DNA from: Anolis carolinensis
Taxonomy: Eukaryota
Length of the DNA stretch: 64,000 nucleotides
Assembly: GCF_035594765.1 (NCBI RefSeq)
Contig: NW_026943824.1
Span: forward strand, 18,347,237 to 18,411,236
Reading direction: 5' to 3'
Position numbers and translations under genes: made by a program
Shown: positions 11,382 through 54,880 of the stretch, piece after piece
Layout: the number at the start of each line of letters is the position of its first letter
Numbering within the stretch: position 1 is the stretch's first letter
Notes under the pieces: model-generated
The model's database searches: none
Told to the model about the DNA's origin: nothing
Seen by the model: only the letters and a program-made list of their open reading frames with translations

Positions 11382-11434
<53 letters not shown>

Positions 11435-23400: not shown

Positions 23401-26400
23401 AGATGAGGTGGAAAATGGGCTCAGTTGACATAAAATCCTGAAGGTAGAATACAAGGTCCAAGTGTTGTTGACCTCCAGTTGGACCTTACCTTAAAGGTTA
23501 GGGTTAGGGTTGTATTTGCCACCTCATGGATATGTACAAGACGGCCATAGATTACCGTATATACTCGAAGATAAGCTGAAAAAGCCTCCCTTGGCTTATA
23601 ATGGGGTCAAGCCCATATATCAAATATGATATATTTCTTTCTCCTCTTTCCCTCCCTTAACAGTGTGTTTTCTTTTCCAGTCAAAAGGGAGGAAAGGAGG
23701 GAGAGGAGGTATATTTCATGTCCTTGTTTGTATGGTTCTCTTTCAAACCCACCCAATTTCCTGGCTTTTTGTGTGTGTGTATAAATGTATTAATCTTACA
23801 TGTACATTTATTTCCGATATTTCATTTTTGTTCCCTTGGAAGTGTACACTGGCCTTTGCAAGCCCTATAGATCTATAAATATGTTTCTATAGATGCATGT
23901 TTCTCCTGAAGTCTTTGCAAACCATACATATATCCATTAATCTTATAAAAGCATTTTCCCCTGAAATATTTTTTAATCTCCCCTACAGATATACAGGCAT
24001 TTCCCTCTGCAAGCCTTTGCAATCCCTATGTACCTATATATCTGTATCTATCTACAGTAGAGTCTCACTTATCCAAGCTAAACGGGCCGGCAGAAGCTTG
24101 GATAAGTGAATATCTTGGATAATAAGGAGGGATTAAGGAAAAGCCTATTAAACATCAAATTAGGTTATGATTTTACAAATTAAGCACCAAAGCATCATGT
24201 TATACAACAAATTTGACAGAAAAAGTAGTTCAATACGCAGTAATGTTATGTTGTAATTACTGTATTTACGAATTTAGCGCCAAAGTATCACAATATGTAG
24301 AAAACATTGACTACAAAAATGGCTTGGATAATCCAGAGGCTTGGATAAGCGAGGCTTGGATAAGTGAGACTCTACTGTATATACATTAATTTTTCCCCTC
24401 ACATGTTTGCAGGTCTTTGCAAATCCTATATACATATAGATCCATGTACCTGTATATCTATATCCATATATACACATTATTTAACCCATTGATGCCTCAA
24501 TTAATATAATGTTATTGGTATCTATTTTTATTTTGAAATTTACCCATAGCTGCTTCATTTCCCATCCTCGGCTTATACTCGGGTCAATAAGTTATCCCAA
24601 TTTTTTGTGGTAAAATTAGGTGCCTCGGCTTATATTCAGGTCGGCTTATCCTCAAGTATATACGGCAATTGATATCTGCAGGAGTGGTGCTTTTTGGCAG
24701 GCACATGTTTATAAGACTTGTGCCTGATTTTGTCTAAAGGTGTGTGAGAACAATACAAAGGAGTCACAGTCTCCTTGAAACCCAAATATTAACCTTCCGG
24801 CACCTAAACAAAGGTACTTTCTTCTCTCCAGGTCAGTCTGATGCACACCTGTAAGCCTTCAACGCGTCCTTTCAGGGCGTCCAGCTCCAACTTCTTCTTC
24901 TTGGTGGTGCTCTTGATCGGCCTCATCTTAGCTTTCATTCCATTGGGACTTAGCATGACACGGTAAGTCAGACTTCATATAGGTTTTCCTGCCATTTTCA
25001 CATGTCAATCCATGTAGGTGAACTTGCTATTACCGTGAAACAAAATAGACTTTGTACTTCACGCTGGATCTTGCCAAAAATCTGGAAATATCCATTAGCA
25101 TGTTATGAAAGTGAATGGAATACAAGATGGATTGTATTTAACTGATTGTTGTTGTTATTTATGTTTTATGTATTTACTTGCTGTGCCCAGCCACGCGTTG
25201 CTGTGGCAAAGTGGTGGTGGTATTGGTTAAAAATTGTTGTGTAATTTTTATTTGACGTGATTTGCATTTTTTTTAATAATTTTATTGTAAGTTATATTTT
25301 TATTTATTATATTTTATTATTTTCTTGTATTATTTTTAGTTATTTTCTGTTATTATAGTATTTTATTGTATCAATTTTTTAGTGTTTTTTATTATTTTTA
25401 TTGGGTTGCTAGGAGACCAAGTTGGAGGAGATTAGCCTTCTAACTGGCAGCAATTGGATAAAAGCAATTATTCCTCTCTCTCTAATTAGGACTTTATTTT
25501 TCTTTTCTTTTTGTTGTATCAACCTAGAGGCGTGGATGATGGGTTGTGTTGTCAAATTTCGAGGTTGGGGGGGCTGTAGTTTTGTTGTTTTGTGGGTCGC
25601 CGTGATGCCATCACTCTTTTATATATATAGATTATGCTTAATTTTACTGGTTGTTTTTTAATCTGTTGTCGTCTGGGCTAGTCCCCATGTATCCCTGGGG
25701 AGATGGTGGCGGATACAAAAATTAAATTATTATTAAATTATTATTATGGAGGGACCATGTTCTTCCAGCTTCTTTCGTTCCCATAAATGTGGTCAGTAGT
25801 CCTTCAAATAAGGGATTTGTGGGAGCAATACAGCCCAACACATTGAAACAGCACTTTGCTTACTGTGTCTGGTCAACCATAAAGGAGGTGGATAACTTAT
25901 TATTATTTTTTTATTAGCGACATTTATATCCCACCTTTTTCACCCCAAAGGGGACTCAAGGCAGCATTACAAGTTATATATACATACAATATATTAAATT
26001 ATTAGTATAGCACAATGTAAGCATTATATATTACTATATTGTACTATACCACTATATTGCAATATTATTAGTAATATTACATGTAATATAAATATACAAT
26101 TATAATAGTGTATTATTATTATATTGTATAAGGAGCCTCCGGTGGCCTAGGGGATAAAAGCCTTGTGACTTGAAGGTTGGGTTGCTGACCTGAAGGCTGC
26201 CAGGTTTGAATCCCATCCGGGGAGAGCGTGGATGAGCTCCCTCTATCAGCTCCAGCTCCATGCGGGGACATGAGAGAAGCCTCCCACAAGGATAGTAAAA
26301 CATCAAAACATCTGGGCAATGTCCCCTGGGCAACGTCCTTGCAGACGGCCAATTCTCTCACTCCAGAAGCACCTCCGGTTGCTCCTGACACGAAAAAAAA

Positions 26401-27052
26401 TTATATTGCATTACATTATAATATTGTTATCAATATTATATGTACATACAATATATTATATTATTAGTATAGCACAATATAAGCATTATATATTACTATA
26501 TTGTGCTATACCACTATATTGCAATATTATTAGTAATATTACATGTAATATAAATATACAATCATAATAGTATATTATTATTATATTGGATTGCATTATG
26601 ATATTGTTATCAATATTATTAGCATAGCATAATATGAGTATTATATATTGTTATATTGACACAGGAGGCATGGTGGAATGATGTCTTCCTTGCCCCCTTC
26701 TTCACTTCCACATCTTGTTCTCTTTCTCGCCCCCAACCGAACAGCATTCCCTCCTCAAAGGCATGTGGACCTTTTGTGACGTTTGAGCATTCGTGGGACA
26801 TTCTGCATCACACTGTCAGTCAATTCCCAGATGTCTTGAGGGCAGTCCTGGATGGCCTCGCATCTGAAGCCTTTGCGGTGCCTTTCTTCATATTAATCTG
26901 GTGAGTGTGGCCAGGGGTGACTTTTAATATTTAATAATAATAATAGCAACAACAACAACACTTGGGAAGTGTTTGACTTGTGATTTTGTGATACGAAATC
27001 CAGCATATAGATCTTGTTTGCTGTGTCATGCTATGTCTTTGCGTCAATAATG

Positions 27053-27084
<32 letters not shown>

Positions 27085-28406
27085 GAGGGTTGGAAGAGAC
27101 CCCTTTCTGCCTTGGTGCCGTGGGGGCCGGATAAATGGCTTCGATGGGCTGCATGTGGCCCATGGGCTGTAGTTTGGGGACCCCTGGTTTAGGACCCCTG
27201 CTTTCCTATTTAATTTGATGAATCCATCTCATGATGTATCTGTTTTCTAGATTGTGTGTTATGCATTTAAATCCATCCGTATTAATGTCCGCTGTTGTAT
27301 TCTTCCCCCATTTGTTTGACAGCCTTGTAATGTTCTATCTCATGGCCTTGGCTGGTGCACATAAACGAGTCGTTAATCAGCTCAGGGAACAATTAGTGAT
27401 GGTAAGTTCTAATCCAGTCGTGCCATTTCTTTATTATTTCCCTATTCCATTGAAATGCACCAATATTTTTAAAATTATGAAGGAGGAATGGATTGTCATA
27501 TCTATCCAGACATCTCTCTTTATATAGATATTTGCAGAAACTTGCAAACATATGAGGGTAAATTCATATATAAAAATAATGTGTATATATATATATATAT
27601 GGATACAGATATACAGGTACATGGATCTATATGTATATAGGATTTGCAAAGACCTGCAAACATATGAGGGGAAAATTCATATATAAAATTAATGTAGATA
27701 CAGTAGAGTCTCACTTATCCAACATAAACGGACCGGCAGAACGTTGGATAAGCGAATATGTTGGATAATAAGGAGGGATTAAGGAAAAGCCTATTAAACA
27801 TCAAATTAGGTTATGATTTTACAAATTAAGCACCAAAACATCATGTTATACAACAAATTTGACAGAAAAAGTAGTTCATTACACATTGATGCTATATAGT
27901 AATTACTATATTTACGAATTTAGCACCAAAATATCACGATATATTGAAAACATTGACTACAAAAATGCGTTGGATAATCCAGAACGTTGGATAAGCGAGT
28001 GTTGGATAAGTGAGACTCTACTGTACATGGATCTATATGTATATAGGATTTGCAAAGACCTGCAAACATATGAGGGGAAAAATCATATATAAAATTTATT
28101 TATTTATTTATTTATTTATTTATTTCCATCATTTATATGCCGCCCTTCTCACCCGAAGGGACTCAGGGCGGCTCACAATACAGTAGAAAAATAAAACATA
28201 GCAATATAAAACAATCAATTTAAAACAATCCCATAAATACATTTAAAACAGTATAATAAAATACTTAATCCATTCGTCCACATAAACCTTGCACGTAAAC
28301 CCTAGTCCGGACCGAGTTAAAGCCATCATAATTCATTCATTAAACGCTTGTTCGCAAAGCCAGGTTTTTACCTTTTTTCTGAAACTCAGAAGATAGATAT
28401 AGACAT

Positions 28407-28467
<61 letters not shown>

Positions 28468-29022
28468 AATACATAGGTACATAGGGATTGCAAAAGCTTG
28501 CAGGGGGAAATGCCCGTATATCTGTGGGAGTTTGACAAATATTTCAGGGGAGAATGCTTTTATAAGATTAATGGATATGTATTTTTCTTCTTCCTGACTT
28601 GCAAGGGCTTTTTTCCCTTTTCAAAACATTCCCTTGGTTAAAAGCGAGGGAGACTCTGGAAAAGAAAACACACTGATAAGGGAGGGTAAGAGAGGAATAT
28701 ATCCTCTCCTTTTGAAAATTTTCAAGTATATATGGTAGATTCTCATAGTAACCTTTCCAAGTTGTGTTCCCTGCATGAAAGTGTTTTCTATTTTGTACAA
28801 AGCGCTTCAGGTTGTCACCACTAAAAAAATGGCGAAAAACATGCTGACATTTATATGCATTTTACTTGATCCCGGAGCAATTTTTAGCCATCTTGACCTC
28901 TGTTTGCATTTGGCAGATTGAAGGATTTGCATTTACGATATCTTTCCTTCTCATTGCCATAGGAGAGCCGGGACAAACTCTTCTTGATCAGGAAGTTGAC
29001 TGAAGCCCAGAGACTTTGCTGA
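4958..29022 (+). CDS. TMC7: Transmembrane channel-like protein 7, 16 coding exons, 714 aa
   Basis: Exons, all GT-AG and phase-consistent, 2145 nt total: 4958-5015, 7194-7428, 9191-9339, 11013-11180, 11468-11553, 13186-13331, 13982-14129, 15264-15437, 16645-16799, 18206-18323, 22030-22127, 22892-23075, 24832-24962, 26745-26900, 27323-27401, 28963-29022 (TGA). Recognisable TMC7 peptides: [39 protein letters not shown], the TMC signature [43 protein letters not shown] and C-terminal [17 protein letters not shown]. Exon 1 is the least certain (chosen on Kozak context, phase and promoter position). Confidence 0.96.
7930..8190 (-). mobile_element. 3' fragment of a different mariner element
   Basis: TA-TGAGGG terminus and minus-strand transposase C-terminus [20 protein letters not shown]. 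Confidence 0.7.
10640..10890 (+). mobile_element. L1-like ORF2 C-terminal fragment
   Basis: [12 protein letters not shown] and [16 protein letters not shown]...WKIWGKF across a frameshift. Similar fragment at ~8205-8400. Confidence 0.55.
11753..12974 (+). mobile_element. Gypsy-type LTR interrupted by CR1, followed by a tRNA-Leu primer-binding site
   Basis: TGTAA (11753)...TTACA (12959) termini, AATAAA at ~12762, then TGGTGGCAGCGGT at 12962-12974, complementary to the 3' end of tRNA-Leu(AAG/TAG). Confidence 0.65.
12141..12695 (-). mobile_element. CR1 LINE 3' fragment
   Basis: [21 protein letters not shown]...[15 protein letters not shown]...RRLRGDMI is the CR1 ORF2 C-terminus, and the 3' end has an (ATTCTATG)n tail. 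Confidence 0.95.
13489..13924. mobile_element. Tc1/mariner/Tigger-like MITE family B
   Basis: TIR C(C/T)GTATATACTCGAGTATAAGCC with TA flanks. Other copies at ~20932-21920, 23555-24665, 34007-34750, 43570-43872 (partial) and 63314-64000. Confidence 0.8.
14889..15222 (-). mobile_element. Non-autonomous Helitron-like element, representative copy
   Basis: 5' TC(TA)n start and 3' hairpin GCCACAGCAACGCGTGGC before terminal CTAG, no TSD. Copies at ~14306-14472, 14713-14888, 22175-22647 (+), 25177-25630, 35666-36141, 49393-50110 and 53718-53892. Confidence 0.7.
15660..16038 (-). mobile_element. tRNA-headed SINE
   Basis: Minus-strand head GGGGCCGGGCTGTGGCGCAGGCTGG...GAGGTCATGAGTCC. Related copy on + at ~61590-62015. 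Confidence 0.55.
17091..18048 (+). mobile_element. Internally deleted mariner element with transposase remnant and ~4 units of a 63-bp repeat
   Basis: TA-flanked TIRs GAGGGTTGAATGAAAAGTAA...TTACTTTTCATTCAACCCTCG. Remnants [34 protein letters not shown] and C-terminal GDDVEK, with stops and frameshifts. Confidence 0.88.
18494..19220. mobile_element. hAT-type MITE with intact 8-bp target-site duplication
   Basis: TIR CAGGGGTCCCCAAACT...AGTTTGGGGACCCCTG flanked by direct repeats CTATAATC (18486-18493 and 19221-19228). Confidence 0.9.
19397..19964. mobile_element. Tc1/mariner-like MITE family C
   Basis: TIR CCGTGTTTCCCC(A/G)AAAATAAGAC...GTCTTATTTTCGGGGAAACAGGG with TA flanks and a duplicated left end. 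Partial copies at ~320-517 and 20400-20666. Confidence 0.75.
22648..22775. other. Assembly gap
   Basis: Run of N. Other gaps at 29692-29846 and 54274-54430. Confidence 0.99.
26131..26400 (+). mobile_element. tRNA-derived SINE with A tail
   Basis: A-box-like GGTGGCCTAGGGG, B-box-like GGTTTGAATCC and a terminal A run. Confidence 0.65.
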
Positions 29023-29846
29023 GAAAACTTTCACAGCCTTTTATTTTTCTAGCGATTTTTGAAACGACTACTAAACGAACACCAGAATAGTTGAACCCTG
29101 AGCAAATAGACACTCATTGTTGCCTCATTGTTTCAGTGAGAATAATGGGTTCTTTCTTATTTTCTGGCTCTTGACCGCCTTGCTGTGTCCTCTTCTATGC
29201 ATAAATGAGTGGTTGATTGACTCAGGGAACCTTCACGTTGACCTGTTATACTTGTCATCAAGTGTTCGCCTTCCTTTTTAAATTAGGATTTCTGTATTTC
29301 CCCCTTTTACAGAATTAAGAACCTCTTAATGACTCCGCACAAAAAAACGACTGTATTAGGGGCCTGTGTGATGATATCTTTATATATTTTAAGCCTCTAT
29401 TTTTCAGGGGCCTTATTTTTGTATTACGTATTGCTTTCTAGGGTTGGAAAGTTGCTCGTAGAAACCTTTACCCCAGTATTATAGCTGTTTTAATCCGAAT
29501 AACAGTAGAAACAGGGCTGGAAAGTTAAGTCATATGATGGTGTGGGTCCAGAAGAACATCTCCCTTCCATATATATGTTTTTCAGTCTCCTCTAGCACAC
29601 GTGTGCAACTCCCCATGTGCAGAGAGTGGGGTGACAGATACATTGCCTATCAGTAACTCAAGACTGTGTTGGTAATTGTGTCTGAAGATTTNNNNNNNNN
29701 NNNNNNNNNNNNNNNNNNNNNNNNNNNNNNNNNNNNNNNNNNNNNNNNNNNNNNNNNNNNNNNNNNNNNNNNNNNNNNNNNNNNNNNNNNNNNNNNNNNN
29801 NNNNNNNNNNNNNNNNNNNNNNNNNNNNNNNNNNNNNNNNNNNNNN

Positions 29847-31476: not shown

Positions 31477-32405
31477 AAGGACATGGTTAGTTTCAAAGTC
31501 TAACATTTTTTCCTAGCCATTTTGAGAAACAAAACATTTTAAAGGGTGTAAAATATGTGTTAATAAATATGCTACAGAGGTTTTAATGAAATGAGTTTAT
31601 TTGTATTTATTTTGGGCTGCGTTCTAAAGCACGGCCAAATCTCATGATTTGCATTTATATGCATTTATATGCTAAAAATAGTTCCACGCTTCAAAATAAA
31701 AAAAATTAAAATATGTTTGTACAGTAGAGTCTCACTTATCCAACATTCTGGATTATCCAACGCTTTTTTGTAGTCAATGTTTTCAAAACATCGTGATATT
31801 TTGGTGCTAAAATTCGTAAATACAGTAATTACTACATAGCAGTACTGCATATTGAACTACTTTTTCTGTCAAATTTGTTGTATAACATGATGTTTTGGTG
31901 CTATATTTGTAAAATCATAACCTAATTTGATGTTTAATAGGCTTTTTCTTAATCCCTCCTTATTATCCAACATATTCACTTATCCAACGTTCTGCTGGCC
32001 CGTTTATGTTGGATAAGTGAGACTCTACTGTATTTATAAACAAATGGCAGATTCACAACAAAGGTAAATACAGTAGAGTCCCACTTATCCAAGCCTCACC
32101 TATCCAAGCTTCTGGATAAACCAAGCCATTGTTGTAGTCAATGTTTTCAATATATCGTGATATTTTGGTGCTAAATTCGTAAATACAGTAATTACAACAT
32201 AACATTACTGCAAACTGAACTACTTTTTCTGTCAAATTTGTTGTATAACATGATGTTTTGGTGCTTAATTTGTAAAATCATACACCAATTTGATGTTTAA
32301 TAGGCTTTTCCTAAATCCTTCCTTATTATCCAACATATTCACTTCTCCAACGTTCTGCCGGCCCGTTTATGTTGGATAAGTGAGACTCTACTGTATTTCC
32401 TAATT

Positions 32406-35400
32406 CTATGGTGGATTTAAACAAGAATGTGTGCTTTGATTTCCGTCAGTTTCATCTGTAGTCACAGACCTGTTCGTCAACATATCCGCTGGCGAATCTT
32501 GGTCCATTTCCTGGCAGAGTTCATACAGAAAAGATGATCCGTGCTTTAGTGTGGCAACGGGGCCATTGCGATCCTCTTGAACACATGCCACGTGTCCAGT
32601 GGGTTTATCTACCACGGCAGGCGCCAGAGCTGCATCTTCTGGGACTCTAAGGTGATGGAGGTTGCCACCATCCGAGCAATGATATTCCTGAGCAAGACCG
32701 CCCGGGATATAGCCTTGCTGATTTTTTTCATAATAAACCTGATTGTATTCAGAGGCTCCATATCCAGGAACTGCAACACACCTAGAAACTACTATAGAAT
32801 TGCCTTGTTCTTCCATCTTTTTCCCAGTCATTGAAAGTTGGGTACTTATCGCTGCTGTTGTTGGCTCTGCAGAGTATTTGGTGTTATCACTTTTTGATAC
32901 TCTGGATTTTTTATTCTTTGGGGAGCGTAGAACTGGCCTCGGATCCAAACCCTTGGCTTTGCTTGAAGCTATTTCCCCAGGTCTAGGACTCCGCGAGTCT
33001 TCTCTTTCCGTTTTATTGAAACGTCCACCAGAATCGTGTGGGTTTTCCTCAGAAAGTGAACGGGTCTTTTCTTGAGCGTTTAGTGTTGTCTTATCTTTGT
33101 GTTCAGAGATGGAGGCTTTGCTTTTAAGTTTGCTTTGCCAACGCGCTTTGTTTTCTCCAGTTTGAAAACTTGAAACCAAGGAACCTCTATTCAGTGAACT
33201 TCTAGCAGTTGGTTTAGGACGAGGTTCAGACAAAAATCTTTTTGATTTAGCAGAGTTGCTGGGGATGCTTGAAAATTCACCTGTCCTCTTTACATCTTCC
33301 CGACTTTTTCTTTCTTGCTTAGCTCTGAAAGGCACCAAAAGATGAAAGTGTTAAAACTTCTAATTGGCTATACCCTCTTTAGAGAAGTACAGTAGAGTCT
33401 CACTTATCCAACGTTCTGGATTATCCAACACATTTTTGTAGTCAATGTTTTCAATACATCGTGATATTTTGGTGCTAAATTTGTAAATACAGTAATTGCT
33501 ACATAGCATTACAGTGTATTGAACTACTTTTTCTGTCAAATTTGTTGTATAACATGATGTTTTGGTGCTTAATTTGTAAAATCATAACCTAATTTGATGT
33601 TTAATAGGGTTTTCCTTAATGCCTCCTTATTATCCAACATATTCGCTTATCCAACATTCTGCCGGCCTGTTTATGTTAGATAAGTGAGACTCTACTGTAT
33701 AATCTCTAATACCAGGACAGTAAATAAAGAGCAACACTCTGAAAGCAGGGAAATTGGGAATTCCAGAAACATTCTGCCGGCCCGTTTACGTTGGATAAGG
33801 GAGACTACTGTATTCCCTAAAAAGTCAGGAAGAAAACTAGAATTCAGACAACTTCCACACTGCAGGAGATACAGACAGTAGCTGTATCTCAACTTAATAA
33901 TAAATTATATATATATATATATATAAATGTTATGTGCTTTTTTCCCATGGAGTAAACAACAAAACCACTGAACTAAATCACACCAAACTGGGCCACAAAA
34001 GACATGCTGTATATACTCGAGTATAAGCCTAGTTTTTCAGCCCCTTTTTTAAGACTGAAATAGCCCGCCTCGGCTTATACTCGGGTGAGGGTCCTGGTTG
34101 GCTTATATTTGGGTCAGCTTATACTCGAATATAAGCCGAGGCACCTAATTTTACCACAAAAAAACTGTGAAAACATTGACTCAAGTATAAGCCGAGAGTG
34201 GGAAATTTCAGAAATAAGAACAGATACCAATAAAATTACATTAATTGAGGCATCAGTAGGTTCAATGTTTTTGAATATTTACATAAAGCTCAAATTTAAG
34301 ATAAGACTGTCCAACTCTGATTAAATCATTATTTAATCAGTGTAAACGTGCTTATGTATCCTTTTAATAATAATAGAGTAAAATAATACATGTAATAATA
34401 GTAATAATAATAATAAATAATAATACAGGAAAATAATACATGTAATATTAAATAGAGTCAAATAATAAATGTAATAATAATAATAATATCAGAGTGAAAT
34501 AATAAATGTATTAATAATAATAATAAATAGAGTAAAATAAATGTAATAGTAGCAACAATAATAGAGAAAAGTAATAAATGTAATACCACCAATAATAATA
34601 GAGAAAAATAATAAATGTACCATATATTCTCGAGTATAAGCTGACCCAAATATAAACCAACCAGGACCCTCACCCAAGTATAAGCCGAGGGGGGCTTTTT
34701 CAGTCTTAAAAAAAGGGCTAAAAACTAGGCTTATACTCGAGTATATACAGTAATTTGACGTTTAATAGGCTTTTCCTTAATCCCAACATTTTTGCTTATC
34801 CAACATTCCGCCGGCCTGTTTATGTTGGATAAGTGAGGCTCTACTATATATTAACTTTAAAATGCAAATGGCACAATGTCATCGAGTGTGCATACCTCCT
34901 TGCTCCATCCTTGCAGGAAAGTGTAGAAGAAAACTGTTGCCTGATACTATTATCCGAAGTCTGGATGCTTTTTACATCTCTTCTCTTTAGAAATGAAGCA
35001 TCTTCTGGAGTTGTTCTGGGTTTTTCTGGAGGAATTTCCGAAATCTCAGGGGAGAAAAAAAAACAGCAATTTTGGCTCAAGTTGTCTTCTTTTCGAATCA
35101 ATCATTACATAATTGCCTTCATAAACTTTGCACAAACGCACTGCGGAATTAAAGCAACAGCAGTGAAAATACTGTTGTCATAGTTGTTGGAATGCAAATT
35201 ATCGGGTCCTCCCAGATCTCTTGATGGGTAGGGCTCATACACTGCTCATCATCATGCTTTGTACATTTGTATCAATAGCTTAATCCAGTGATGGCCAACC
35301 TATGACACGCGTGTCACCACTGACACGCCTAGCCATTTTGCTGACACGCTGCCGGATGCAGATTGATTGGATGACTAGAGTCTTTTGTGGCCAAATTTGG

Positions 35401-38400
35401 TGTGATTTGGTCCAGTGGTTTTGTTGTTTACTCCATGGGAATTATGCACATTACATTTATATATAATATTATTATATCATTCTATTATTATTGTAATATA
35501 TTATCATATTATTACTACTATATTATTATTCATTATTCATGACTACATTGAAACTAGAATAGAGAGAAATCAGCGTGGAAACTGCAAGAGGTCCCATAGA
35601 TTGTTGTACATGGAAATAATGGTAGTCAATAGTTTTTGATTTATTAAATACAGTTATATATTACAACTAGCTGTGCCCGGCCACGTGTTGCTGTGGCAAA
35701 GTGGTGGTGGTATTGGTTAAAAATTGTTGTGTAATTTTGATTTGACGTTATTTGCATTTTTTTAATTAATTTTATTGTAAGTTATATTTTTATTTATTAT
35801 ATTTTATTATTTTCTTGTATTATTTTTAGTGATTTTCTGTTATTATAGTATTTTATTGTATTAATTTTTTAGTGTTTTTAATTATTTTTTAGTGGTTTTT
35901 TATTATTTTTTATTGGGTTGCTAGGAGACCAAGTTGGAGGAGCTTAGCCTTCTAACTGGCAGCAATTGGATAAAAGCAATTATTCCTCTCTCTCTAATTA
36001 GGACTTTATTTTTCTTTTCTTTTTGTTGTATCAACCTAGAGGCGTGGATGATGGGTTGTGTTGTCAAATTTCGAGGTTGGGGGGCCTGTAGTTTTGTTGT
36101 TTTGTGGGTCGCCATGATGCCATCACTCTTTTATATATATAGATTATATATTTTTGTTATTTAAACTATATATATTGTGAAATTATGGTTTGTTTTTTTT
36201 CTCGAAGTGACACACCACCCAAGTCATGCTAGGTTTGTTGGTGAATTTTGACACACCAAGCGCAAAAGCTTGCCCATCATTGTATTATTGAGTCCTCTTT
36301 AGGGTGAGAAGGGCAGGATATAAATGTCGCTAATAAATGATAAATACAATGCAGGAGGAACATAAAGAAACAGTAAAGATTAATTCAGTAAAAAGGTGGG
36401 AATTGATACATACTGTAGCCACAATGAGCTTGGAAGCTGATGAAACAAGCCTCTCTACTTCTTCCGGTGACATAAATGGGGTAGCAGTTCTGTGTAGACT
36501 TTTTTGAGAGGCTCTGTGCAGCCCTTTTTGCCTAATGAAAGATGAAGTGGCATTTCAGTAATTCTAGTAAATAGCTGGTAGTTACAGCAAGAGATATATT
36601 TTCCAGAGGGAAGTCAATTTCTGTATAAACGAGGCATCTAATGGTGACAAGGCCACATACAATTATGAATCCCCCTATCCAGAGTATTCCAAATTTTTAT
36701 ATTGTTGAAGGCTTTCATGGCTGGAATCACGGGGTTGCTGTGAGTTTTCCAGGCTGTCTGGCCATGTTCCAGAAACATTCTCTCCTGACGTTTCACCCAC
36801 ATCTATGGCAGGCATCCTCAGAGGTTGTGAGGTCTGTTGGAAACTAGGCAAGTGGGGTTTATACATCTGTGGAATGATGTCCAGAGTGGGAGAAAGACTT
36901 CTTGCCTGGCCTTGCAGCTTCAAGGTCTGCCTGGGGAATCTTTTGTTGGGAGGTGTTAGCTGACCCTGATTGTTTCCTGCCTGGAATTCCCCTGTCTGGA
37001 ATTGCATTGTATTGGTTTCACTGGATGCCTTTTTTAGAGAGAAAAGTGGGAAAATAAAAAATGTGCACACGTTTTAAAAAGATCTGATAACATTCATGGA
37101 TGTGTATTATTGATTCCAGCCATGAAAGCCTATAAAAGATAAGCCTATAAAAGATTCACTTATCCAAGGTTCTGCCGGCCTGTTTAGCTTGGATAAGTGA
37201 GACTCTACTGTATTTGAGTCTCACTTATCCAAGCTAAACGGGCCGGCAGAACCTTGGATAAGTGAATATCTTGGATAATAAGGAGGGATTAAGGAAAAGC
37301 CTATTAAACACCAAATTAGGTTATGATTTTACAAATTAAGCACCAAAACATCATGTTCTACAGCTAATTTGATAGAAAAAGTAGTTCAATACGCACTAAT
37401 GTTATGTTGTAATGACTGTATTTACGAATTTAGCATCAAAATATCATGATATATTGAAAACATTGACTACAAAAATGCCTTGGATAATCCAGAATCTTGG
37501 ATAAGCGAGTCTTGGATAAGTTAGACTCTACTGTATTATTGTTTCCTAGCTCACTTGAAACAAGTGGGGAAAGAACGGTTTAGAGCAATTACATTGGTTC
37601 AGCAATATGTCATACCATCGCACATTCTTTACTTTTCCTTCATTCCTTCTCTCTGGTACGTAGCTCTACAAAAAAAAAAAAAGACAGACCCCATCATTAG
37701 CATGGTTTGCTGTTATAAGTGACTTAAAACAACTCTTAGACCAGGCATGGGCAAACTTCGGCCTTCCAGATGTTTTGGACTTCGACTCTGACAATTCCTA
37801 ACAGCCTCAGGCCCCATCCTTTCCCCCCTCAGCCGCTTAAGCGACATGCATCTACCTCCACTGAGGTGTAAAGCAGACTGACTACAAAATGGAGTTCTGA
37901 GTCTGAACATGCTCAGTACAATCAAATGTCTATAACCCTTCCTATACCACATGCTTAAGAGGCTGAGGGGGGAAAGGAAAGGGCCTGAGTCTGTTAAGAA
38001 TTGTCAGAGTTGAAGTCCAAAACACCTAGAGGGCCCAAGTTGTTGTTGTTGTTGTTGTTGTTGTTATTATTATTTGCAATATTTGCTCAGAGGGGGCTTG
38101 ACTTTGCATTCCCCTGGTACAGGCATATGAAATTACAGTAGAGTCTCACTTATCGAACACTCGCTTATTCAATGTTCTGGATTATCCAACGCATTTTTGT
38201 AGTCAATGTTTTCAATACATCGTGATATTTTGGTGCTAAATTCGTAAATACAGTAATTACTACATACCATTACTGTGTATTGAACTACTTTTTCTGTCAA
38301 ATTTGTTGTATAACATAATGTTTTGGTGCTTAATATGTAAAATTATAACCTAATTTGATGTTTAATAGGCTTCTCCTTAATCTCTCCTTATTATCCAACA

Positions 38401-41195
38401 TATTCGCTTATCCAACATTCTGCCGGCCTGTTTACGTTGGATAAGCGAGACTCTACTGTATATTCTAAGCATTACCTGTGCCATCTTTTTAATACGATTT
38501 TCCAAATCCTTTTGCTTTTCTGGAGCTTTCCGGAGCTTTCTGTGGCAGTCTTCAGCGGTGCCCATAAAGGCACGAAGGGAAGCTTCCAATTTAATGTTGG
38601 AAAAATCATGCTCCTTCTGGTCCGTCAAGCAAGCAGGCTTCTGCAAGAAAAAAAAAATTAAAATAGTTCGCAGTCAGCGAGGGAAGTGTACAGCAAATCG
38701 TCAACAGACATTTATAGTGAAGCAAAAAGTGGGTGCTAGAAATAATATATGAAAGCTGACCGGCACAACCAGGAATCACAACCAGACACTGTGAAGACAT
38801 CTGCCTTTGTGCTTGGCTACTCTGCTGCTGAATACGCATGTCCAGTATGGGACACATCTCACCACGTTAAAACAGTGGATGTGGCTCTTAATGAGACTTG
38901 CCACATTACCACAGTATTTATAATTGGAGAAATTATACTGTTTAGCTGGTATTGCAGCAACTCATATCCATTGGAAAGTAGCAGTCAACAATGAAAGGAC
39001 CAAGGCAGTGACATCTCGGGCCCATCCTCTGTTTGGATGTCAGCCAGCAAGTCAATGCCTTAAATCAAGAAACAGCTTCCTAAGATCTACAGAGACACTC
39101 ACAGGAAGACCTAAGCAAATAAGAGTCCAAAAGTGGCAGGCTAAAACCCAGAACCTCAATCCATGGCTGAGACTGGAGGATAGATCCCTTCCTGAGCAGA
39201 CAGAAGACTGGGCGACATGGAATAATAATAATAATAATAACAACAACAACAAAATTACGATCTGCCAACTGCAAAAGGCCACCCAACTAGGATCTGCACG
39301 CATAATCCGAAAATACATCACACAGTCCTAGACACTTGGGAAGTGTTCGACTTGTGATTTTGTGATACGAAATCCAGCATATCTATCTTGTTTGCTGTGT
39401 CATAATAAAATAATAATAATAATAATAATACATCACACAGTTCTAGACACTTGGGAAGTGTTCAACTTGTGATTTTGTGATACGAAATCCAGCATATCTA
39501 TTTTGTTTGCTGTGTCATACAATATAATAATTATAATAATAATACTTTATTTTTCTATCCCGCCACCATCTCCCCGAAGAGAGCTAGCCCAAAATAGAGA
39601 CAAAGTATAACAGGATTAAAACCAATATCAATAACTAAGAAACAATTATCACAACAATCAAGTAAAATAAACAATTAAAACATAGCATACAATAAAACAC
39701 ATAGTGATCATACAAAATGAGGTTCAGTAGAGTCTCACTTATCCAAGCTTCACTTATCCAATGTTCTGTATTATCCAACGCAGTCTGCCTTTTAGTAGTC
39801 AATGTTTTTGTAGTAAATGTTGCAATGTTTTGGTGCTAAATTTGTAAATACAATAATTACGACATAACATTACTGTGTATTGAACTGCTTTTTCTGTCAA
39901 TTTCTTGTAAAACATGATGTTTTGGTGCTTAATTTGTAAAATCATAATGTAATTTTATGTTTAATAGGCTTTTTTCTTAATCCCTCCTTATTATCCAACA
40001 TTTTAGCTTATGCAATTTTCTGCCGGCCTGTTTATGTTGGATAAGTGAGACTTTACTGTAATAATACAAGCGTCACCACTATGGATAAAAAGGGGTTGGT
40101 CATGAGACCAAGTCCAGATAATCAGAATAACACAAAATAAAATACATACATAAAGCAAATCAACAACAAATAGAAATTAAAACCAGATAAAAACACATTT
40201 AGGAGTAATCAATGCAAAACAGAACAAGGATTAAAATGAGAGCGAACTGGGCCAAAGTGCAAGGAGTATATATTGTAAACTGTACCCTCGGTTTCGCTTC
40301 TGATATGAGAAATAAATAAATAGCAGACATTTATAACCCAGGAACAAAAATTGTGTGACATGCGGTAACTATGCTGCATAAGCCGCATAGCAGCTAGAAA
40401 ATGCTTACCCCATACAAGCTTTCAGAGTCAGCATGGATGACTCCACACGAAGTGAAGGAATCTTCTTTTCTCTGCACATCAATGTAATATTTTCTAGGGG
40501 GAATAATAAAAATAATAATAATAAATAATAATGAACAAATGCAATTAAGGGCAAGATCGAAAAATCAGCTGATGACCCAAAATGCAGACTGTGCAAGGAA
40601 ACCGACGGAACCATGGATCATATCCTCAGCTGCTGTAAGAAAATCGCACAGACAGACTACAAACAGAGGCACAACTATGTGGCGCAAATGATTCATTGGA
40701 ACTTATGCCTCAAGTACCACCTCCCAGCAGCAAAGAACTGGTGGGATCACAAATCTGCAAAAGTATTGGAAAATGAGCACGCAAAGAGACTGTGGGACTT
40801 CCGAATCCAGACTGAGAAAGTTCTGGAACACAACACACCAGACATCACAGTTGTGGAAAAGAAAAAGGTTTGGATCATTGATGTCGCCATCCCAGGTGAC
40901 GAAAAACAACAGGAAAAACTCAGCCGCTCTCAGGACCTCAAGATTGAGCTTCAAAGACTCTGGCAGAAACCAGTGCAGGTGGTCCCGGTGGTGGTCGGCA
41001 CACTGGGTGCCGTGCCAAAAGATCTCAGCTGGCATTTCGAAACAATAGACATTGACAAAATTACAAAAAAGGCCACCCTACTGGGATCTGCACGCATCAT
41101 CCGAAAATACATCACACAATCCTAGACACTTGGGAAGTGTTCGACTTGTGGTTTTGTGATATGAAATCCAGCATATCTATCTTGTTTGCTGTGTC

Positions 41196-41240
<45 letters not shown>

Positions 41241-41496
41241 TAGTGGTTATCCCTCAGGCAGCCTTCTCCTAGCGCAAGCCTGGGCCTACTTCGGCCTTCC
41301 CTCCAGGAGTTTTGGACTACAACTCCCACAATTCCTAACAGCCGGCTGTTAGGAATTGTGGGAGTTGTAGTCCAAAACTCCTGGAGGGAAGGCCGAAGTA
41401 GGCCCAGGCCTGCGCTAGGAGTTCCAGCGCTTCTTCCTCGGTGCCTTACAGGCGGTGGGCCACCGCGCGAGCCAGGCCCCGCTCCCACGACGCCAT
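32406..41496 (-). CDS. Uncharacterised 7-exon protein-coding gene (~510 aa), head-to-head with COQ7
   Basis: Minus-strand exons 41496-41450, 40493-40409, 38640-38476, 37665-37616, 36531-36414, 35044-34896 and 33324-32406 give 1533 nt with no internal stop. Kozak ggcggccATGG. Donors GTAAGG, GTAAGC, GTAATG, GTATGA, GTATGT, GTATGC. Acceptors have pyrimidine tracts (one is GAG). Protein: MASWERGLARAVAHRLKYYIDVQRKEDSFTSCGVIHADSESLYGKPACLTDQKEHDFSNIKLEASLRAFMGTAEDCHRKLRKAPEKQKDLENRIKKMAQSYVPERRNEGKVKNVRWQKGLHRASQKSLHRTATPFMSPEEVERLVSSASKLIVATISEIPPEK...SCLNPP*. Confidence 0.8.
35286..36282. mobile_element. hAT-like MITE with nested Helitron
   Basis: CAGTGATGGCCAAC...CTTGCCCATCATTG termini. No TSD evident. 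Confidence 0.55.
36784..36824 (-). ncRNA. Minimal hammerhead ribozyme motif, sense to the novel gene's intron 4
   Basis: Minus strand reads CCT CTGAGGA T GCCTGC CATAGAT GTGGGT GAAAC GTC AGG. Confidence 0.55.
38750..39220 (+). mobile_element. Vingi/Ingi-like LINE fragment
   Basis: PDTVKTSAFVLGYSAAEYACPVW...VDVALNETC and LYCLAGIA...LKSRNSF, typical of the post-RT region of this clade. Confidence 0.7.
40530..41240 (+). mobile_element. R4/Dong-clade non-LTR retrotransposon 3' fragment
   Basis: CRLC...HILSCC zinc knuckle, RHN, WDFRIQ and PDITVV...IIDVAIPGD (restriction-like endonuclease), then 3' UTR and (TAA)n tail. Other fragments at ~2912-3165, 26957-27080, 39250-39520 and 59620-59885. Confidence 0.88.
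41267..41420. repeat. 154-bp near-perfect palindrome (hAT-type MITE hairpin)
   Basis: Centre CAGCCGGCTG at ~41339-41348. The arms are reverse complements with one mismatch that I can see. Confidence 0.9.
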
Positions 41497-41866
41497 GGCC
41501 GCCAAAGCTCCGTCGTTGTTTTGGCGTCGCCACGGCAACCGCCGTTCTTGGGATTGACTACCCTTTCCCACCAATGGGGACGCGAGGCTCCGGAGGGCGG
41601 TGACAAAACCAGCCAATCACAGCCCAGCAGAGGAGAGCAAGAGAAGGGCGGGGCCTCTCGCTGTCATGATATCCCACTTTAGGAATTGACGAACCTTTCC
41701 ACCAATGGGAAAACGAAGCTCGACAGAGCGGTGACCGAATAGACCAATAGAAATCCAGAAGAGGAGAGAGGGGCGGGACCTTCTCTTGTAAACTAAGAAT
41801 CTTATTTAAGGAAGGTTTACTCATCATTGGTGCGTCATCACTGTGCGCCGGGAGGTAAAGAGAAAT
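41497..41866. promoter_or_regulatory. Bidirectional promoter shared by COQ7 and the minus-strand gene
   Basis: 370 bp between divergent ATGs, CpG-rich. X-box GTCGCCACGGCAAC at 41526-41539. CCAAT at ~41571, 41613, 41702, 41744 and reverse at ~41826. GGGCGGG at ~41646 and 41771. TGCGTCA at 41831. A YY1-like AATATGGCGGC overlaps the COQ7 ATG. Confidence 0.75.
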
Positions 41867-42475
41867 ATGGCGGCGGCTGCTTCTTTGCTGTGTGGTACGG
41901 AGAGGCCTTGTTGTTGTTGTTTTGTTTTGTTTTTGTTGTTTTTCAGGATTTTTAATGCCCAGAGTCGTGGTTTGAGCCTTGGGCTGTGACTCTGACACTC
42001 TCTCAGCCCCTCTTGCCACATCCCAGCATTCTTTTTTAAACTATTATTATTATTATTATTATTGACACAAAGACATAGTATGACACAGCAAATGAGATCT
42101 ATATGCTGGATTTCGTATCACAAAATCACAAGTCGAACACTTCCCAAGTGTTTAGGACTGTGTGGTGTATTACTATTATTATTATTTGACAAATTACTTG
42201 ACGCCCCGAGTCCCTCTGGGGAGATGGAGGTGGGATATAAAAATAAAATTATTATTATTATTATTATTTTATTATGACACAGCAAACAAGATAGACATGC
42301 TGGATTTCGTATCACAAAATCACAAGTTGAACACTTCCCAAGTGTCTAGAACTGTGTGATGTATTATTATTATTATTATTATTTTATAATGACACAGCAA
42401 ACAAGATAGATATGCTGGATTTCGTATCACAAAATCACAAGTCGAACACTTCCCAAGTGTCTAGGACTGTGTGAT

Positions 42476-42510
<35 letters not shown>

Positions 42511-42713
42511 TTATAATGACACAGCAAACAAGATAGATATGCTGGATTTCGTATCACAAAATCACAAGTCGAACACTTTCAAGTCTCTAGGACTGTGTAA
42601 TGTATTATTATTATTATTATTTTATAATGACACAGCAAACAAGATAGATATGCTGGATTTCGTATCACAAAATCACAAGTCGAACGCTTCCCAAGTGTCT
42701 AGGACTGTGTGAT

Positions 42714-42748
<35 letters not shown>

Positions 42749-43290
42749 TTATAATGACACAGCAAACAAGATAGATATGCTGGATTTCGTATCACAAAAT
42801 CACAAGTCGAACACTTCCCAAGTCTCTAGGACTGTGTAATGTATTATTATTATTATTATTTTATAATGACACAGCAAACAAGATAGATATGCTGGATTTC
42901 GTATCACAAAATCACAAGTCGAACACTTCCCAAGTCTCTAGGACTGTGTAATGTATTATTATTATTATTATTTTATAATGACACAGCAAACAAGATAGAT
43001 ATGCTGGATTTCGTATCACAAAATCACAAGTCGAACACCTCCCAAGTGTCTTCCCAAGTGGTTATGATTTTACAAATTAAGCACCAAAACATCATGTTAT
43101 ACAACAAATTTGACAGAAAAAGTAGCTCAATACGCAGTAATGTTATGTTGTAATTACAGTATTTACGAATTTAGCACCAAAATATCATGATATATTGAAA
43201 ATATTGACTACAAAATGGCTTGGATAATCCATAAGCTTGGATAAGCGAGGCTTGGATAAGTGAGACTACTGTACATGTATTATTTTCCTG

Positions 43291-43336
<46 letters not shown>

Positions 43337-46110
43337 ATGTATTAATTTTGTTGTCGAAGGCTTTCATGGCCCGGATCACAGGGTTGTTGTATGTCTTTTG
43401 GGCTGTGTGGCCATGTTCCAGAAGTATTCTCTCCTGACGTTTCGCCCACATCTATGGCAGGCATCCTCACAACCTCTGAGGATGCATGCCATAGATGTGG
43501 GCGAAAGGTCAGGAGAGAATACTTCTGGAACATGGCCACACAGCCCAAAAGACATACAACAACCCTATTACATGTATTATTTTACTCTACTATTATTAAA
43601 AGGATACATAAAGCACATTTACATTGAAGAAGATGAGAATAATGATCCAATCAGAGTTGGACAGTCTTATCTTAAATTTTAGCTTGATTTAAATATTCAA
43701 AAACATTTAACCTACCGATGCCTCAATTAATGTAATTTTATTGGTATCTGTTTTTATTTCTGAAATTTACCGCTCTCGGCTTATACTGGAGTTAATGTTT
43801 TCCCAGTTTTCTTGTGGTAAAATTAGGTGCCTCGGCTTATATTCGGGTCGGCTTATACTCGATTATATACGGTAATTCTCTGGTCATAACTATTCCTTGT
43901 AGTATATTGTTTCCAAAAGTAGGTAGCAAAATCTGGTGATCAAAATTTGTGAACCTTAGGCCTTACCAAAAACAGCCCGGAGGGCAGAATCCTTGGTCTA
44001 CTTCTCTATGTTTGTTTGTCTTTGTTCTATGTTAAAAGGCATTGAATGTTTGCCTATATGTGTAATGTGATCCGCCCTGAGTCCCCTTCGGGGTGAGAAA
44101 GAAGGGCGGAATATAAATGCTGTAAATAAATAAATAAATAAAATACTGTATTTTTGACAGGTGCAAGAAGAAGATGGACTTTGCAGCCCATATACTCATC
44201 TCTCAGATTTTGTGGAACTGGAATGAACTCGGATAACGTCAATAAGGCAGTTCTTGATCGCATAATCAGAGTGGATCATGCAGGCGAATATGGAGCAAAC
44301 CGCATTTATGCCGGGCAAATGGCAGTGCTTGGTAGAACGTCAGTAGGACCAGTTATCCAGGTGCTTGTCCACATGTTTCTGATTTATTTTTTCTCATATG
44401 TATCAGAGTGTGAGTGCTGGTTCTGAGATCCAAAGCAAAATCACAAAACAGATCACACACTCTTTGATTGTGTGTTTTGATTGTGTGCTTCTACATGCAA
44501 GGGTTGGACTGGATGGCTTTTGTGGTTTCCTCCAACTCTAGGATTCTATGCATTTGCACTGTTTATGAGTCTATAATGTTGGCTGCATTCAGAGGAAACA
44601 CTCCTGAGCCCCCAAAGTGTGATTTGAATGATTGGGAGCCAGTTTCCATGCTACTCAGAGTGATCGTTCATGAACTGGTGCTAGTCTGCAAGACATTCAG
44701 TGGTAGGTTTCCAGGAAAGAAAAAAATCAGTTGTAGCCAATGGGGAAAAAAATTAAGTGCCCCAATGTATGATTAGAGATAAGAGCATAGAAAGTGTGCG
44801 CGCGTATACATGATATACTGGTCTTAAACCACTTCATTTGATGTGTTGCAATAGCAGATTCCCAGATTAGCTTAGTGTTTGCACCTTATTTTATTTTTTT
44901 TGGTGATTTAATATTTAATGTTTATTTTACTTAAGTGATATTTGTCTTTACTGTTCTAATGTAGCACAAATCCTATGTAAAATCATACTATGTATTTTTG
45001 ACATTAATATTGAAATCTGAAATATATACCGCTGCCTGTTTGTGATCATCCCAGATAGTAATTTGCCAAGGTATGCATGCAAACATGGGACTTGTTACTG
45101 AAACTTAAGTGAGATTGTTTGAAAGTTCAATGATATGGTGTCTAAATGACGTAATGATAATGTTCAGATGTGTAGCTTTGTGTTTGTCTGTGGGGATGAG
45201 AGAGGCTGAGGGGTTTCAAAATCCTTTGTCATGAATACTGGAGAGTGTTAGCATTAGATAGCTAACCCCGTACGGTATTATCCGGTATTTATTAGGTCTT
45301 TATTTTATTATCTATGCATTTTATCTCATTATTGTATTCTTGCATAGATGTTTCAGTTCCTCCACCCATGTAGACGACAGAATTGTAATTGATGGTTGAT
45401 TGATATTATTAACTATTCTAATACCTTTGTTTTATATTGTATTTTGTTTTAATATTGTTATATTGTGATTGTATGTATGTTGTTTTTATCTGATTATGTT
45501 GTTCAGGCTCTGCCCCATGTAAGCTGCCCCTAGTCCCCTTGGGGAGATGGTGGTGGGGTATAAATAAAGTTTTATTTATTTATTAGCGACATTTATATCC
45601 TGACATTCTCACCCCGAAGGGGACTCAGGGCGGCTTACAAGTTATATATACATACAATAAATTATATTATTAGTATAGCACAATATAAGCACTATATAAG
45701 CATTATATATTATTATATTGTACTATATGACTATATTGCAATATTATTAGTAATATTACATGTAATATAAATATACTATTATAATAGTGTATTATTATTA
45801 TTATATGGTATTACATTATATTATTATCAATATTATATGTATTTACAATAAATTATATTATTAGTATAGCACAATATAAGCATTATATATTACTATATTG
45901 TACTATACCACTGTATTGCAATATTATTAGTAATATTGCATGTAATATAAAGATACAATTGTAATAGTGTATTATTATTATTACATTGTATTAAATCATA
46001 ATATTATTATCAATATTATATGTATATATGTATATACAATATATTATATTAGTATTGTATAATATGAGTATTATATATTATTATATTGTTAAATTGATAC
46101 AGGAGACATG

Positions 46111-46151
<41 letters not shown>

Positions 46152-49061
46152 TCTCCTAAGCCAGTGTGGTCCAACCTGTGGCCAATTCATTTTTGTTGGC
46201 CCTTGCCCTTCTTAATGGAAAAATATTTTAATTTAACATTGGGAAAAAATTATTTACCCTTCTTACTGCTTTAAGTTTTTAAGGAACGTGTGACGATGAA
46301 TGCCATTTTCTTTGACTATGTGTGTTGTTTTTAAACACAGGAAATGTGGAATCAGGAAAAGGAACATTTGAAAAAATTCAAGGATTTAATGATCACGTAC
46401 AGAGTCCGGCCAACTGTTCTGTTGCCCTTTTGGAACATTGCAGGGTTTGTGTTAGGTGAATTTCCCAAATTGTTTTGTTCATTTTTAACCCAAATCTATA
46501 TATGAGGCACACATTTGATTTTTCAAATACACTTAAAACAAACAGGAGCCGGAACCGCCTTACTTGGAAGAAAAAGTGCAATGGCTTGTACCGTGGCTGT
46601 AGAAGAGAGCATCTCCGATCATTATAACAACCAGATCAGGACACTCATGGAAGAAGATCCAGAAAAGTACAGAGAATTGTTAGAGGTATCCTTTAACCGT
46701 ATGGTAATCTATATATATATATAAATGTAATGTGGCGTTTTACTATGGAGTAAACAACAATAAATAAATAGATTATAAATATAATATGTAATAATTACTA
46801 TGGTATAATAATGCAGAACAATATAATCTCTAAAACGAGGATAGTAAACAAAGAGCAACACTCTGAAAACAAGGAAATTGGGAATTCCAGAAAGGAAAAA
46901 ATCAGGGCCAGCTAACACCTCCCAACAAAGGATTCCCCCAGGCAGGAAGCCAACCAGGCTTTGAAGATGCAAGGCAATTAAATGCTAATCAAGGTGGCTA
47001 ATTGCAGCATTCCTACCTGCTACACCGAGACTATTAATTGCTATTCAAACTGGCCGACCAAGGATTCCGCAAGGGAGAAAGCGGCCAGGCTTGCAAGCAG
47101 CAAGGCTATTCAGTGCTTCTCAACCTAGCCAACCAAGATTTCCCCTAGATAGAAAATCCCCAGGCTCTGAAGCCACAAGGCTACTCGGTCCCATCCAACA
47201 AGGCCTAGCAAGGATGCCCTATGTAGAAAGCGGCCAGGCTTTGAAGCTGCAAGACTATTCAGTGCAATTCATTCTGGCCAAACAATGATTCTCTAACTAA
47301 GGAAGTAGCCAGGCTTCAAAGCGACTCTTTGATTGAGGGTGATACTCCAGCTACTCCAGAAAACGGCCAGGCTTTGAGGCTGCAAGGCTATTCACTGCAT
47401 TTCAAAAGATGTAGAGTGCACATTCTTTATACCTTTTATTCTTATTTGTTTTTAAACCAGACAATAAAGAAATTTAGAGATGAAGAGTTGGAGCATCACG
47501 ACACTGGACTCGACCATGATGCAGCACTGGTAAATATACGTAACATGAACTTTGCTAGCTAGGGATTAGGGTACTTATTAGACACTAATACCCTCCCCTC
47601 AGCATCAGCATAGTACTATATAATATAATAATATTCTGCTATGGTAATAATATAATATATTGTATATACATGTAATATATTCTACTAATAATACAATATA
47701 ATAATAATACACTATTATAATTGTATACTTATATTACATTTAATATTACTAATAATGTTGCAATATAGTGATTTAGTACAATATATAATGTTTATATTGT
47801 GCTATATGAATAATATAATATATTGTATATCCATATCATATTGATAATAATATTATAATATAATACAATATAATAATAATACACTATTATAATTGTATAT
47901 TTATATTACATGTAATATTACTAATCATATTGCAATATAGTGGTTTAGTACAATATAGTAATATATAATGATTATATTGTCCTCTATGAATAATATAATA
48001 TATTGTATATACATATCATATTGATAATAATATTATAATATAATACAATATAATAATAATACACTATTATAATTGTATATTTATATTACATGTAATATTA
48101 CTAATCATATTGCAATATAGTGGTTTAGTACAATAAAGTAATATATAATGATTATATTGTCCTCAATGAATAATATAATATATTGTATATACATATCATA
48201 TTGATAATAATATTATAATATAATACAATATAATAATAATAATACACTATTACAGTAGAGTCTCACTTATCCAACATAAACAGGCCAGCAGAATGTTGGA
48301 TAAGCGAATATGTTGGATAATAAGGAGAGATTAAGGAAAAGCCTATTAAACATCAAATTAGGTTATGATTTTACAAATTAAGCACCAAAACATCATGTTA
48401 TACAACAAATTTGACAGAAAACGTAGTTCAATACGCAGTAATGCTATGTAGTAATTACTGTATTTACGAATTTAGCACCAAAATATCACGATGTATTGAA
48501 AACGTTGACTACAAAAATGCATTGGATAATCCAGAACGTTGGATAAGCGAGTGTTGGATAAGTGAGACTCTGCTGTATAATTGTATATTTATATTACATG
48601 TAATATTACTAATAATATTGCAATATAGTGGAATAGTACAATATAATAATATATAATGCTTATATTGTGCTATGCTAATAATATAATATATTGTATGTAC
48701 ATATGACTTGTAAGCCGCCCTGAGTCCCCTTCGGGGTGAAAAGGGCGGGATATAAATATCACAAATAAATAAATAGTAAATATTTTTGACAGCCTGGAAA
48801 ACTCACAGCAACCCACATGGAGGGCCACATGTTCTCACCTCTGTTTTTCTTTTATCTTCACATTCCATGCATTAGTCTTTTTTCTGATGTGTCATTTTAA
48901 AAATTACTACAGTTTTCAAAGTAATTTAGTATGAAATATACTAAATAGCCTTATCTTCTATTTTTCTTTTTCTTTTGTTACAGGCTCCAGCATATTCAGT
49001 CCTGAAGAATACAATACAGATAGGATGTAAAGCTGCAATATTTTTATCAGAAAGAATATAG
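41867..49061 (+). CDS. COQ7: 5-demethoxyubiquinone hydroxylase (CLK-1), mitochondrial di-iron enzyme, 6 exons, 209 aa
   Basis: Exons 41867-41894, 44161-44360, 46341-46455, 46546-46685, 47461-47529 and 48984-49061 (TAG), 630 nt. Motifs [64 protein letters not shown] and [12 protein letters not shown]. Confidence 0.97.
42080..43050 (-). repeat. Tandem array of 8 R4/Dong 3'-end units separated by (TTA)n
   Basis: ATGACACAGCAAACAAGATAGATATGCTGGATTTCGTATCACAAAATCACAAGTCGAACACTTCCCAAG recurs at ~42080, 42274, 42389, 42516, 42627, 42754, 42865 and 42977. Confidence 0.9.
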
Positions 49062-54273: not shown

Positions 54274-54880
54274 NNNNNNNNNNNNNNNNNNNNNNNNNNN
54301 NNNNNNNNNNNNNNNNNNNNNNNNNNNNNNNNNNNNNNNNNNNNNNNNNNNNNNNNNNNNNNNNNNNNNNNNNNNNNNNNNNNNNNNNNNNNNNNNNNNN
54401 NNNNNNNNNNNNNNNNNNNNNNNNNNNNNNTAGGAAGTGTGAACGCCTTCCTGTGAGGTTTCCTTTGCTGCCTGTAACTCTGTTGGGAAGCTTCCCCAAA
54501 CTTTCTGTCTGTAAGAATTTGCAAAACGTGTCTTGTTGTGGAAAGAAGGATTGGGGATAAAGTTTCAGTGGAGAAGCTTTTCCCCCCTGAGGATAACTTT
54601 TCCAGGAGGGGATTTCCCTTCTTTTCTTTGTCTTCAGTCCCGTTGGGAACCGGGAGTTGTTTGCGAGTGGGGTGCCTGTAACTGGAGGAGAGGATCCTGA
54701 AGTGTAGCCTTTCCTCCTCCTCCTCCTCCTCCTCCTCCTCTTCCTCCTCCTCCTTTCTGAGCTCAACAGGGCGGTGACTTTCCTGGGTCCCTTTTTGCCA
54801 AGGAGGAGGAGGAGAAGTAACGGTCTGGAAGAAGGAAGCAGGCGGAAAAGGAGAGGAGATTTTGCCGGGCTTGGCCTCTT

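Follow-up and report, generated by a model that had tools for sequence, protein, structure and literature searches.

A gene between TMC7 and COQ7 in Anolis carolinensis belongs to an unnamed animal-wide family and has lost part of the ancestral architecture

A seven-exon gene between TMC7 and COQ7

The window analyzed here is a stretch of 64,000 nt from Anolis carolinensis in which TMC exons (plus strand, about 11045-29023) and COQ7 exons (44229-47532) flank a further gene, placed tail-to-tail with TMC7 and head-to-head with COQ7. A preliminary description of this DNA had located the gene between these neighbors and had assembled seven minus-strand exons into a 1533-nt frame of 510 aa, with a strong Kozak ATG and junction phases 2,0,0,2,0,2. 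That model proved exact: there is a single stop, which is terminal, all six introns are GT-AG, the phases are as given, and the start codon lies in the context GCC-ATG-G. Exon 1 (41450-41496, minus strand, as are all that follow) carries the start codon at 41496 and the beginning of conserved helix A, and the position and phase (2) of its intron are identical in shark, sterlet, Xenopus and Nematostella. Exon 2 (40409-40493) encodes the most conserved motif of helix A, KYY.DV.R.E; exon 3 (38476-38640, phase 0-0) the central helices; exon 4 (37616-37665) a basic linker; and exon 5 (36414-36531) the conserved helix C (E..RL.SSASKLIVAT), with which the N-terminal domain (N-domain) ends. Exon 6 (34896-35044) is a fast-evolving linker, at a place occupied by linker and PLAT exons in amphibians and sharks. 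The coding part of exon 7 (32406-33324, stop codon TAG at 32406-32408) corresponds to the first three-quarters of the large low-complexity exon of the family. Exon 3 is lacking in isoform X2 records of A. sagrei and of the shark Heterodontus and is a probable cassette exon, perhaps an old one.

The matching phases had been judged unlikely to arise by chance, and comparison with other species bears this out. Junctions and phases are identical in Podarcis, Eublepharis and Phrynosoma; introns 1-5 also have the same positions and phases in sterlet, Xenopus and white shark, as do introns 1, 2, 4 and 5 in Nematostella. These shared junctions and introns confirm the gene model and, at the same time, refute its reading as a lineage-restricted gene.

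Several other features of the window were recorded. A non-LTR retroelement fragment (40613-41125) lies in intron 1 of the gene, and about eight tandem copies of the short 3′ end of the same retroelement, with (ATT)n tails, occupy 42040-43050 in COQ7 intron 1. Beyond COQ7 is a single-exon ORF of 475 aa (56434-57861), which from its position we take to be ITPRIPL2, and long tandem arrays at 50719-52410, 54138-55290, 58676-59236 and 60107-61177 open spurious repeat ORFs.

The gene had been described as unrecognized, which does not hold: its 510-aa product is letter-for-letter identical to XP_062820649.1, the uncharacterized LOC134294224 of Anolis carolinensis. Since this NCBI model exists already, the finding is ordinary as a discovery of annotation. 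The record itself gives no family, domain or function. The accompanying statement that no family could be recognized stands, in that no characterized family was matched in Pfam, NCBIfam or the PDB. Literature searches by locus and accession found no paper on any family member, and a homology search with the last exon returned a sole match, the gene itself.

Distribution and predicted structure of the N-domain

A homology search with the N-terminal region, as the preliminary description had proposed, found homologues widely. Residues 1-160 retrieved orthologues from lizards, snakes, turtles, sharks, rays and sturgeons, with single-sequence E values from 1e-50 (squamates) to 2e-8 (shark). A profile built from those orthologues matched 85 proteins among 1.84 billion, including Nematostella (E 2e-16) and Oscarella (E 2e-11). 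The named vertebrate matches include frogs, a newt, coelacanth, gar, bowfin and two early-branching teleosts; the others comprise tunicates, a hemichordate, an annelid, a snail, a brachiopod, Nematostella, Trichoplax and two sponges. With homologues of the N-domain reaching sponges, the suggestion of a lineage-restricted or orphan gene fails. Mammals, birds, crocodilians, arthropods and nematodes are missing from the named profile matches, as are protists; about half of the 85 are unnamed to species, and we regard the absence from these five animal groups as provisional. The anole gene is thus real, already annotated, and a member of an unnamed and unstudied animal-wide family with an undescribed domain.

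Tree and neighborhood agree with descent of a single gene. An N-domain tree of the 84 rows with at least 110 aligned residues, rooted at the midpoint only, follows the species tree: sharks, ray-finned fishes, amphibians, turtles and squamates group as expected of one orthologous gene. The head-to-head neighbor is COQ7 in shark, Podarcis, gecko and turtle; at the other end, a TMC gene is placed tail-to-tail with the gene in sterlet, Xenopus, Podarcis and gecko. In Xenopus no COQ7 gene is called within 10 kb upstream. The COQ7/TMC synteny is maintained across jawed vertebrates. At the sterlet locus (L002 1-9237) the head-to-head neighbor is NOMO instead of COQ7. That the anole gene is the orthologue of a single-copy, unnamed animal gene, its identity and history taken together, we consider nearly certain.

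Alignment of the N-terminal 155 aa revealed a domain of three conserved segments joined by variable basic linkers. This region had been called helical from its residues, and the AlphaFold prediction agrees, giving confident but separate helices at residues 3-27, 58-101 and 138-155. Because these helices are separate and the pTM is 0.23, the N-domain is not expected to be a stand-alone globule. The fold search that had been proposed along with structure prediction gave no match: Foldseek and VIA-align with the AlphaFold model reached a best Z of 3.7, to generic helices. PDB searches with one sequence and two profiles gave best E values above 0.2 and matched no solved axoneme structure. An exon-by-exon Pfam scan found no match, for the N-domain or otherwise; NCBIfam gave scattered single matches, none significant; and the ESM Atlas gave no usable match for the anole or Nematostella N-domain. 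Matches of one family member to RIB43A (E 0.0002) and of one to SPMAP1-like (E 0.007-0.02) are each single-member matches among 48 scanned, and we do not count them as support. The central motif of the invertebrate N-domains may resemble the N-termini of ERICH3 and FSIP2.

Ancestral architecture and its erosion

The N-domain followed by a linker, a PLAT domain, a long low-complexity stretch and 3-5 ankyrin repeats is found in Oscarella, Nematostella, the annelid, the snail, the hemichordate, sharks and amphibians. The ancestral product consisted of a helical N-domain, linker, PLAT domain, large low-complexity exon and 3-5 ankyrin repeats. Neither PLAT nor ankyrins occur in tunicates, ray-finned fishes, coelacanth or any reptile, which, on the accepted animal tree, amounts to about four independent losses, although errors in gene models are possible, most of all for coelacanth. 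A kinase-like ending of the sterlet protein was dropped from consideration, as a kinase domain occurs in no other member.

The anole protein is accordingly without PLAT and without C-terminal ankyrin repeats. PLAT is missing from all reptile proteins, and no relic of it was found in reptile introns. The last two reptile exons occupy the place of the first two ankyrin exons of shark and Xenopus, with equal phases, and reptile C-termini align to the first amphibian and shark ankyrin exons (hhalign P 0.019, above 60 of 60 column shuffles). This modest but consistent evidence suggests that the reptile ankyrin exons decayed in place into a short tail; the last reptile exon apparently continues past the former donor site and ends at a new stop.

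In carolinensis the erosion has gone further. Other squamates mostly have 650-770 aa in nine or ten exons, against 510 aa in seven in the anole. The annotated Phrynosoma gene (L004 6378-22065) is a mis-annotation of 540 aa that omits exons 1, 2, 5, 6 and 9; we rebuilt a complete nine-exon, 733-aa frame at this locus and read the anole lesions against it. Relative to Phrynosoma, a 10-nt deletion creates the TAG at 32406-32408. Ten bases past this stop, a TA-flanked MITE (32069-32395, with terminal inverted repeats of ~27 nt) sits at the junction of a deletion, where it replaces ~4.8 kb; exons 8 and 9 were lost with this segment, together with the remainder of the large exon and some of the 3′ untranslated region. 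A 38-nt relic of the ancestral 3′ untranslated region follows (32034-32071, minus strand), matching Phrynosoma L004 22943-22980, and a second copy of the same MITE (31720-32032) lies within this relic region. Beyond it is a conserved distal 3′ block (31532-31641, minus strand; 85% to Phrynosoma) with two AATAAA motifs (31611-31606 and 31601-31596), a candidate poly(A) signal. Since the deletion has brought the large exon next to the old poly(A) region, no exon junction is left downstream of the new stop, and an ordinary mRNA from the truncated gene is plausible. The lost C-terminal exons were not found elsewhere between the gene and TMC7. In all, carolinensis lost ~220 C-terminal residues and two exons, comprising the short tail and one quarter of the large exon; what remains is the N-domain plus ~350 low-complexity residues.

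Selection acts unevenly on what remains. A dN/dS comparison across squamates had been suggested, and among four lizards the N-domain (0.18-0.40) falls below exons 6-7 (0.56-0.85); the low-complexity tail, which had been described as S/K/R/E-rich, has that composition and evolves fast (dN/dS 0.6-0.7). On the carolinensis branch since the A. sagrei split, with exon 3 left out, 1 change falls in the 99 columns compared for the N-domain, against 40 in the 337 of the tail (Fisher p 0.0003). So little change in the N-domain indicates that the anole core is still constrained, and from these substitution patterns we conclude that it is under purifying selection.

Could the anole copy be an early pseudogene all the same, its function gone and its frame unbroken as yet, in a family decaying among amniotes? 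The loss of ~220 residues with two exons would fit, as would the nearly neutral evolution of the tail on the anole branch (about 1.0 from parsimony counts) and the lack of any bird or mammal among the named matches. So would the state of a turtle orthologue (L009 6573-24185, GCA_015237465.2; probably a sea turtle): exon 2 contains a stop and the frame is broken in exon 1, the large exon and the last exon. Its X-box is intact. The Caretta and Lepidochelys records are short as well. The anole copy, however, shows neither a broken frame nor neutral change in its conserved part, the marks of a pseudogene: no damage is seen in its seven exons, splice sites, start context or X-box, the N-domain is nearly unchanged since the A. 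sagrei split, the new stop has no junction past it, and the tail of Phrynosoma is just as relaxed though untruncated. We therefore regard decay to a pseudogene as improbable. Less probable still, and by our estimate very unlikely, is that the truncation is an assembly error, a collapse between two MITE copies, and that living anoles carry the full nine-exon gene. The truncation is known from one assembly and its junction falls exactly at a high-copy MITE; but there is no sequence gap at that junction, and a collapse would not produce the separate 10-nt deletion that makes the stop just before the MITE.

The locus is a clean case of stepwise erosion, in which two domains were lost repeatedly and ankyrin exons decayed in place; further steps are the MITE-linked cut in the green anole, the broken sea-turtle copy and an apparent loss in birds and mammals.

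The shared promoter and a possible ciliary role

The gene and COQ7 have in common a head-to-head spacer of 370 nt (41497-41866) with several CCAAT boxes and a candidate COQ7 start at 41867. In this spacer, 43 nt before the start codon, is an RFX X-box-like 14-mer (41526-41539) with 2 mismatches to the palindrome. Such a 14-mer lies no more than 85 nt from the annotated start in seven of nine testable loci, among which the reptile sites share ancestry and hence are not independent. The matches are at -49 in gecko and Podarcis, at -85 in Phrynosoma and, with three mismatches, at -58 in shark; in Xenopus and turtle the match overlaps the annotated start codon (L003 9995-10008 and L009 6567-6580), and the true start there may be the next in-frame ATG. 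No X-box was found near the start in sterlet or Nematostella. The background is 0.003-0.011 per 120 nt, and a strict match occurred in 10 of 2000 spacer shuffles. The only other close match in the window (4635-4648, two mismatches, G+C-rich) lies upstream of the TMC7 exons and is probably the TMC7 promoter, an assignment that fits the testis-specific expression of mouse TMC7 (PMC11398861).

Genuine RFX targets are enriched among genes whose X-box is kept between species, whereas the mere presence of an X-box predicts little (PMC2375033). Functional X-boxes tend to be close to the start (PMC5838959), and in spermatids RFX2 drives genes of cilia and flagella (PMC4498915). With a conserved X-box beside its start, the best guess for the gene is a ciliary or spermatid role, towards which the promoter sequence inclines us slightly. 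Against such a role are the promoter held in common with COQ7, the occurrence of RFX sites at non-ciliary genes and the lack of a named protist homologue, unlike core axonemal proteins. The protein may instead be real but non-ciliary, for example a scaffold of germ cells or a general one between membrane and cytoskeleton; the X-box would then serve COQ7 or respond to a housekeeping RFX factor. This would agree with retention of the head-to-head COQ7 promoter from shark to lizard and with the failure to match anything in a ciliary database or structure, and PLAT and ankyrin domains occur in many non-ciliary proteins. Yet the X-box is 43 nt from the start of this gene and about 330 nt from that of COQ7, and Xenopus has the site too, despite the lack of a called COQ7 within 10 kb upstream; on balance we think a non-ciliary protein unlikely, though less so than a pseudogene. 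Every named carrier belongs to a group of animals that has motile cilia. Motile cilia and sperm are also present in mammals, birds and most teleosts, groups without a named match.

Under the ciliary or sperm-tail interpretation, RFX factors would act through the X-box to turn the gene on in cells assembling motile cilia or sperm tails. The N-domain, not folding alone, would bind with its three helical segments along the surface of a partner, for example the axoneme or the axonemal base; such binding would be the core function. PLAT, for membrane or lipid contact, and the ankyrins, for contact with proteins, would then be accessory tethers that several lineages could drop. The explanation as a whole, an orthologue with eroded architecture and an RFX-driven role in cilia or sperm tails, seems to us reasonably probable; the stronger proposal, that the family is a component of motile cilia or sperm tails found across animals and so far undescribed, with the N-domain as a new binding module, we put forward tentatively, as something short of an even chance. 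If that proposal is true, a new ciliary component has kept its N-domain while shedding its PLAT and ankyrin tethers independently in tunicates, ray-finned fishes, coelacanth and reptiles. In either case a gene family and domain as old as animals are now defined, and the link to the cilia programme is testable, most easily in Xenopus skin, Nematostella and Ciona sperm. Under the stronger proposal, the family would have been overlooked because it is apparently missing in mammals, birds, zebrafish, fly and worm. The gene could not be traced in the Xenopus Rfx2/Foxj1 tables, where most entries go by human gene name.

Several known systems invite comparison. The closest are the PLAT-type relatives Nematostella A7RYU3, Xenopus LOC108701546, Pleurodeles A0AAV7M0Y7 and white shark LOC121287976, on which no paper was found in the literature searched: their N-domain, introns and large exon are homologous to those of the anole gene, and the vertebrate locus is identical, but they keep the PLAT domain and ankyrin repeats that the anole protein has lost. 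Polycystin-1, LOXHD1 and the lipoxygenases have PLAT in common with the ancestral form of the family and not with the anole protein; none of these other PLAT proteins is known to join PLAT to such an N-domain and to terminal ankyrins. Extended helical axonemal proteins such as RIB43A and SPMAP1-like resemble the N-domain in having non-globular helices and short Y/H/F motifs, although profile and fold searches of the N-domain gave no significant match to known axonemal helical proteins. Finally, RFX-target genes of cilia and spermatids (PMC4498915), including those of the Xenopus Rfx2/Foxj1 programme (PMC5245798), carry a conserved 14-bp X-box-like site by the start, and so does the gene described here.
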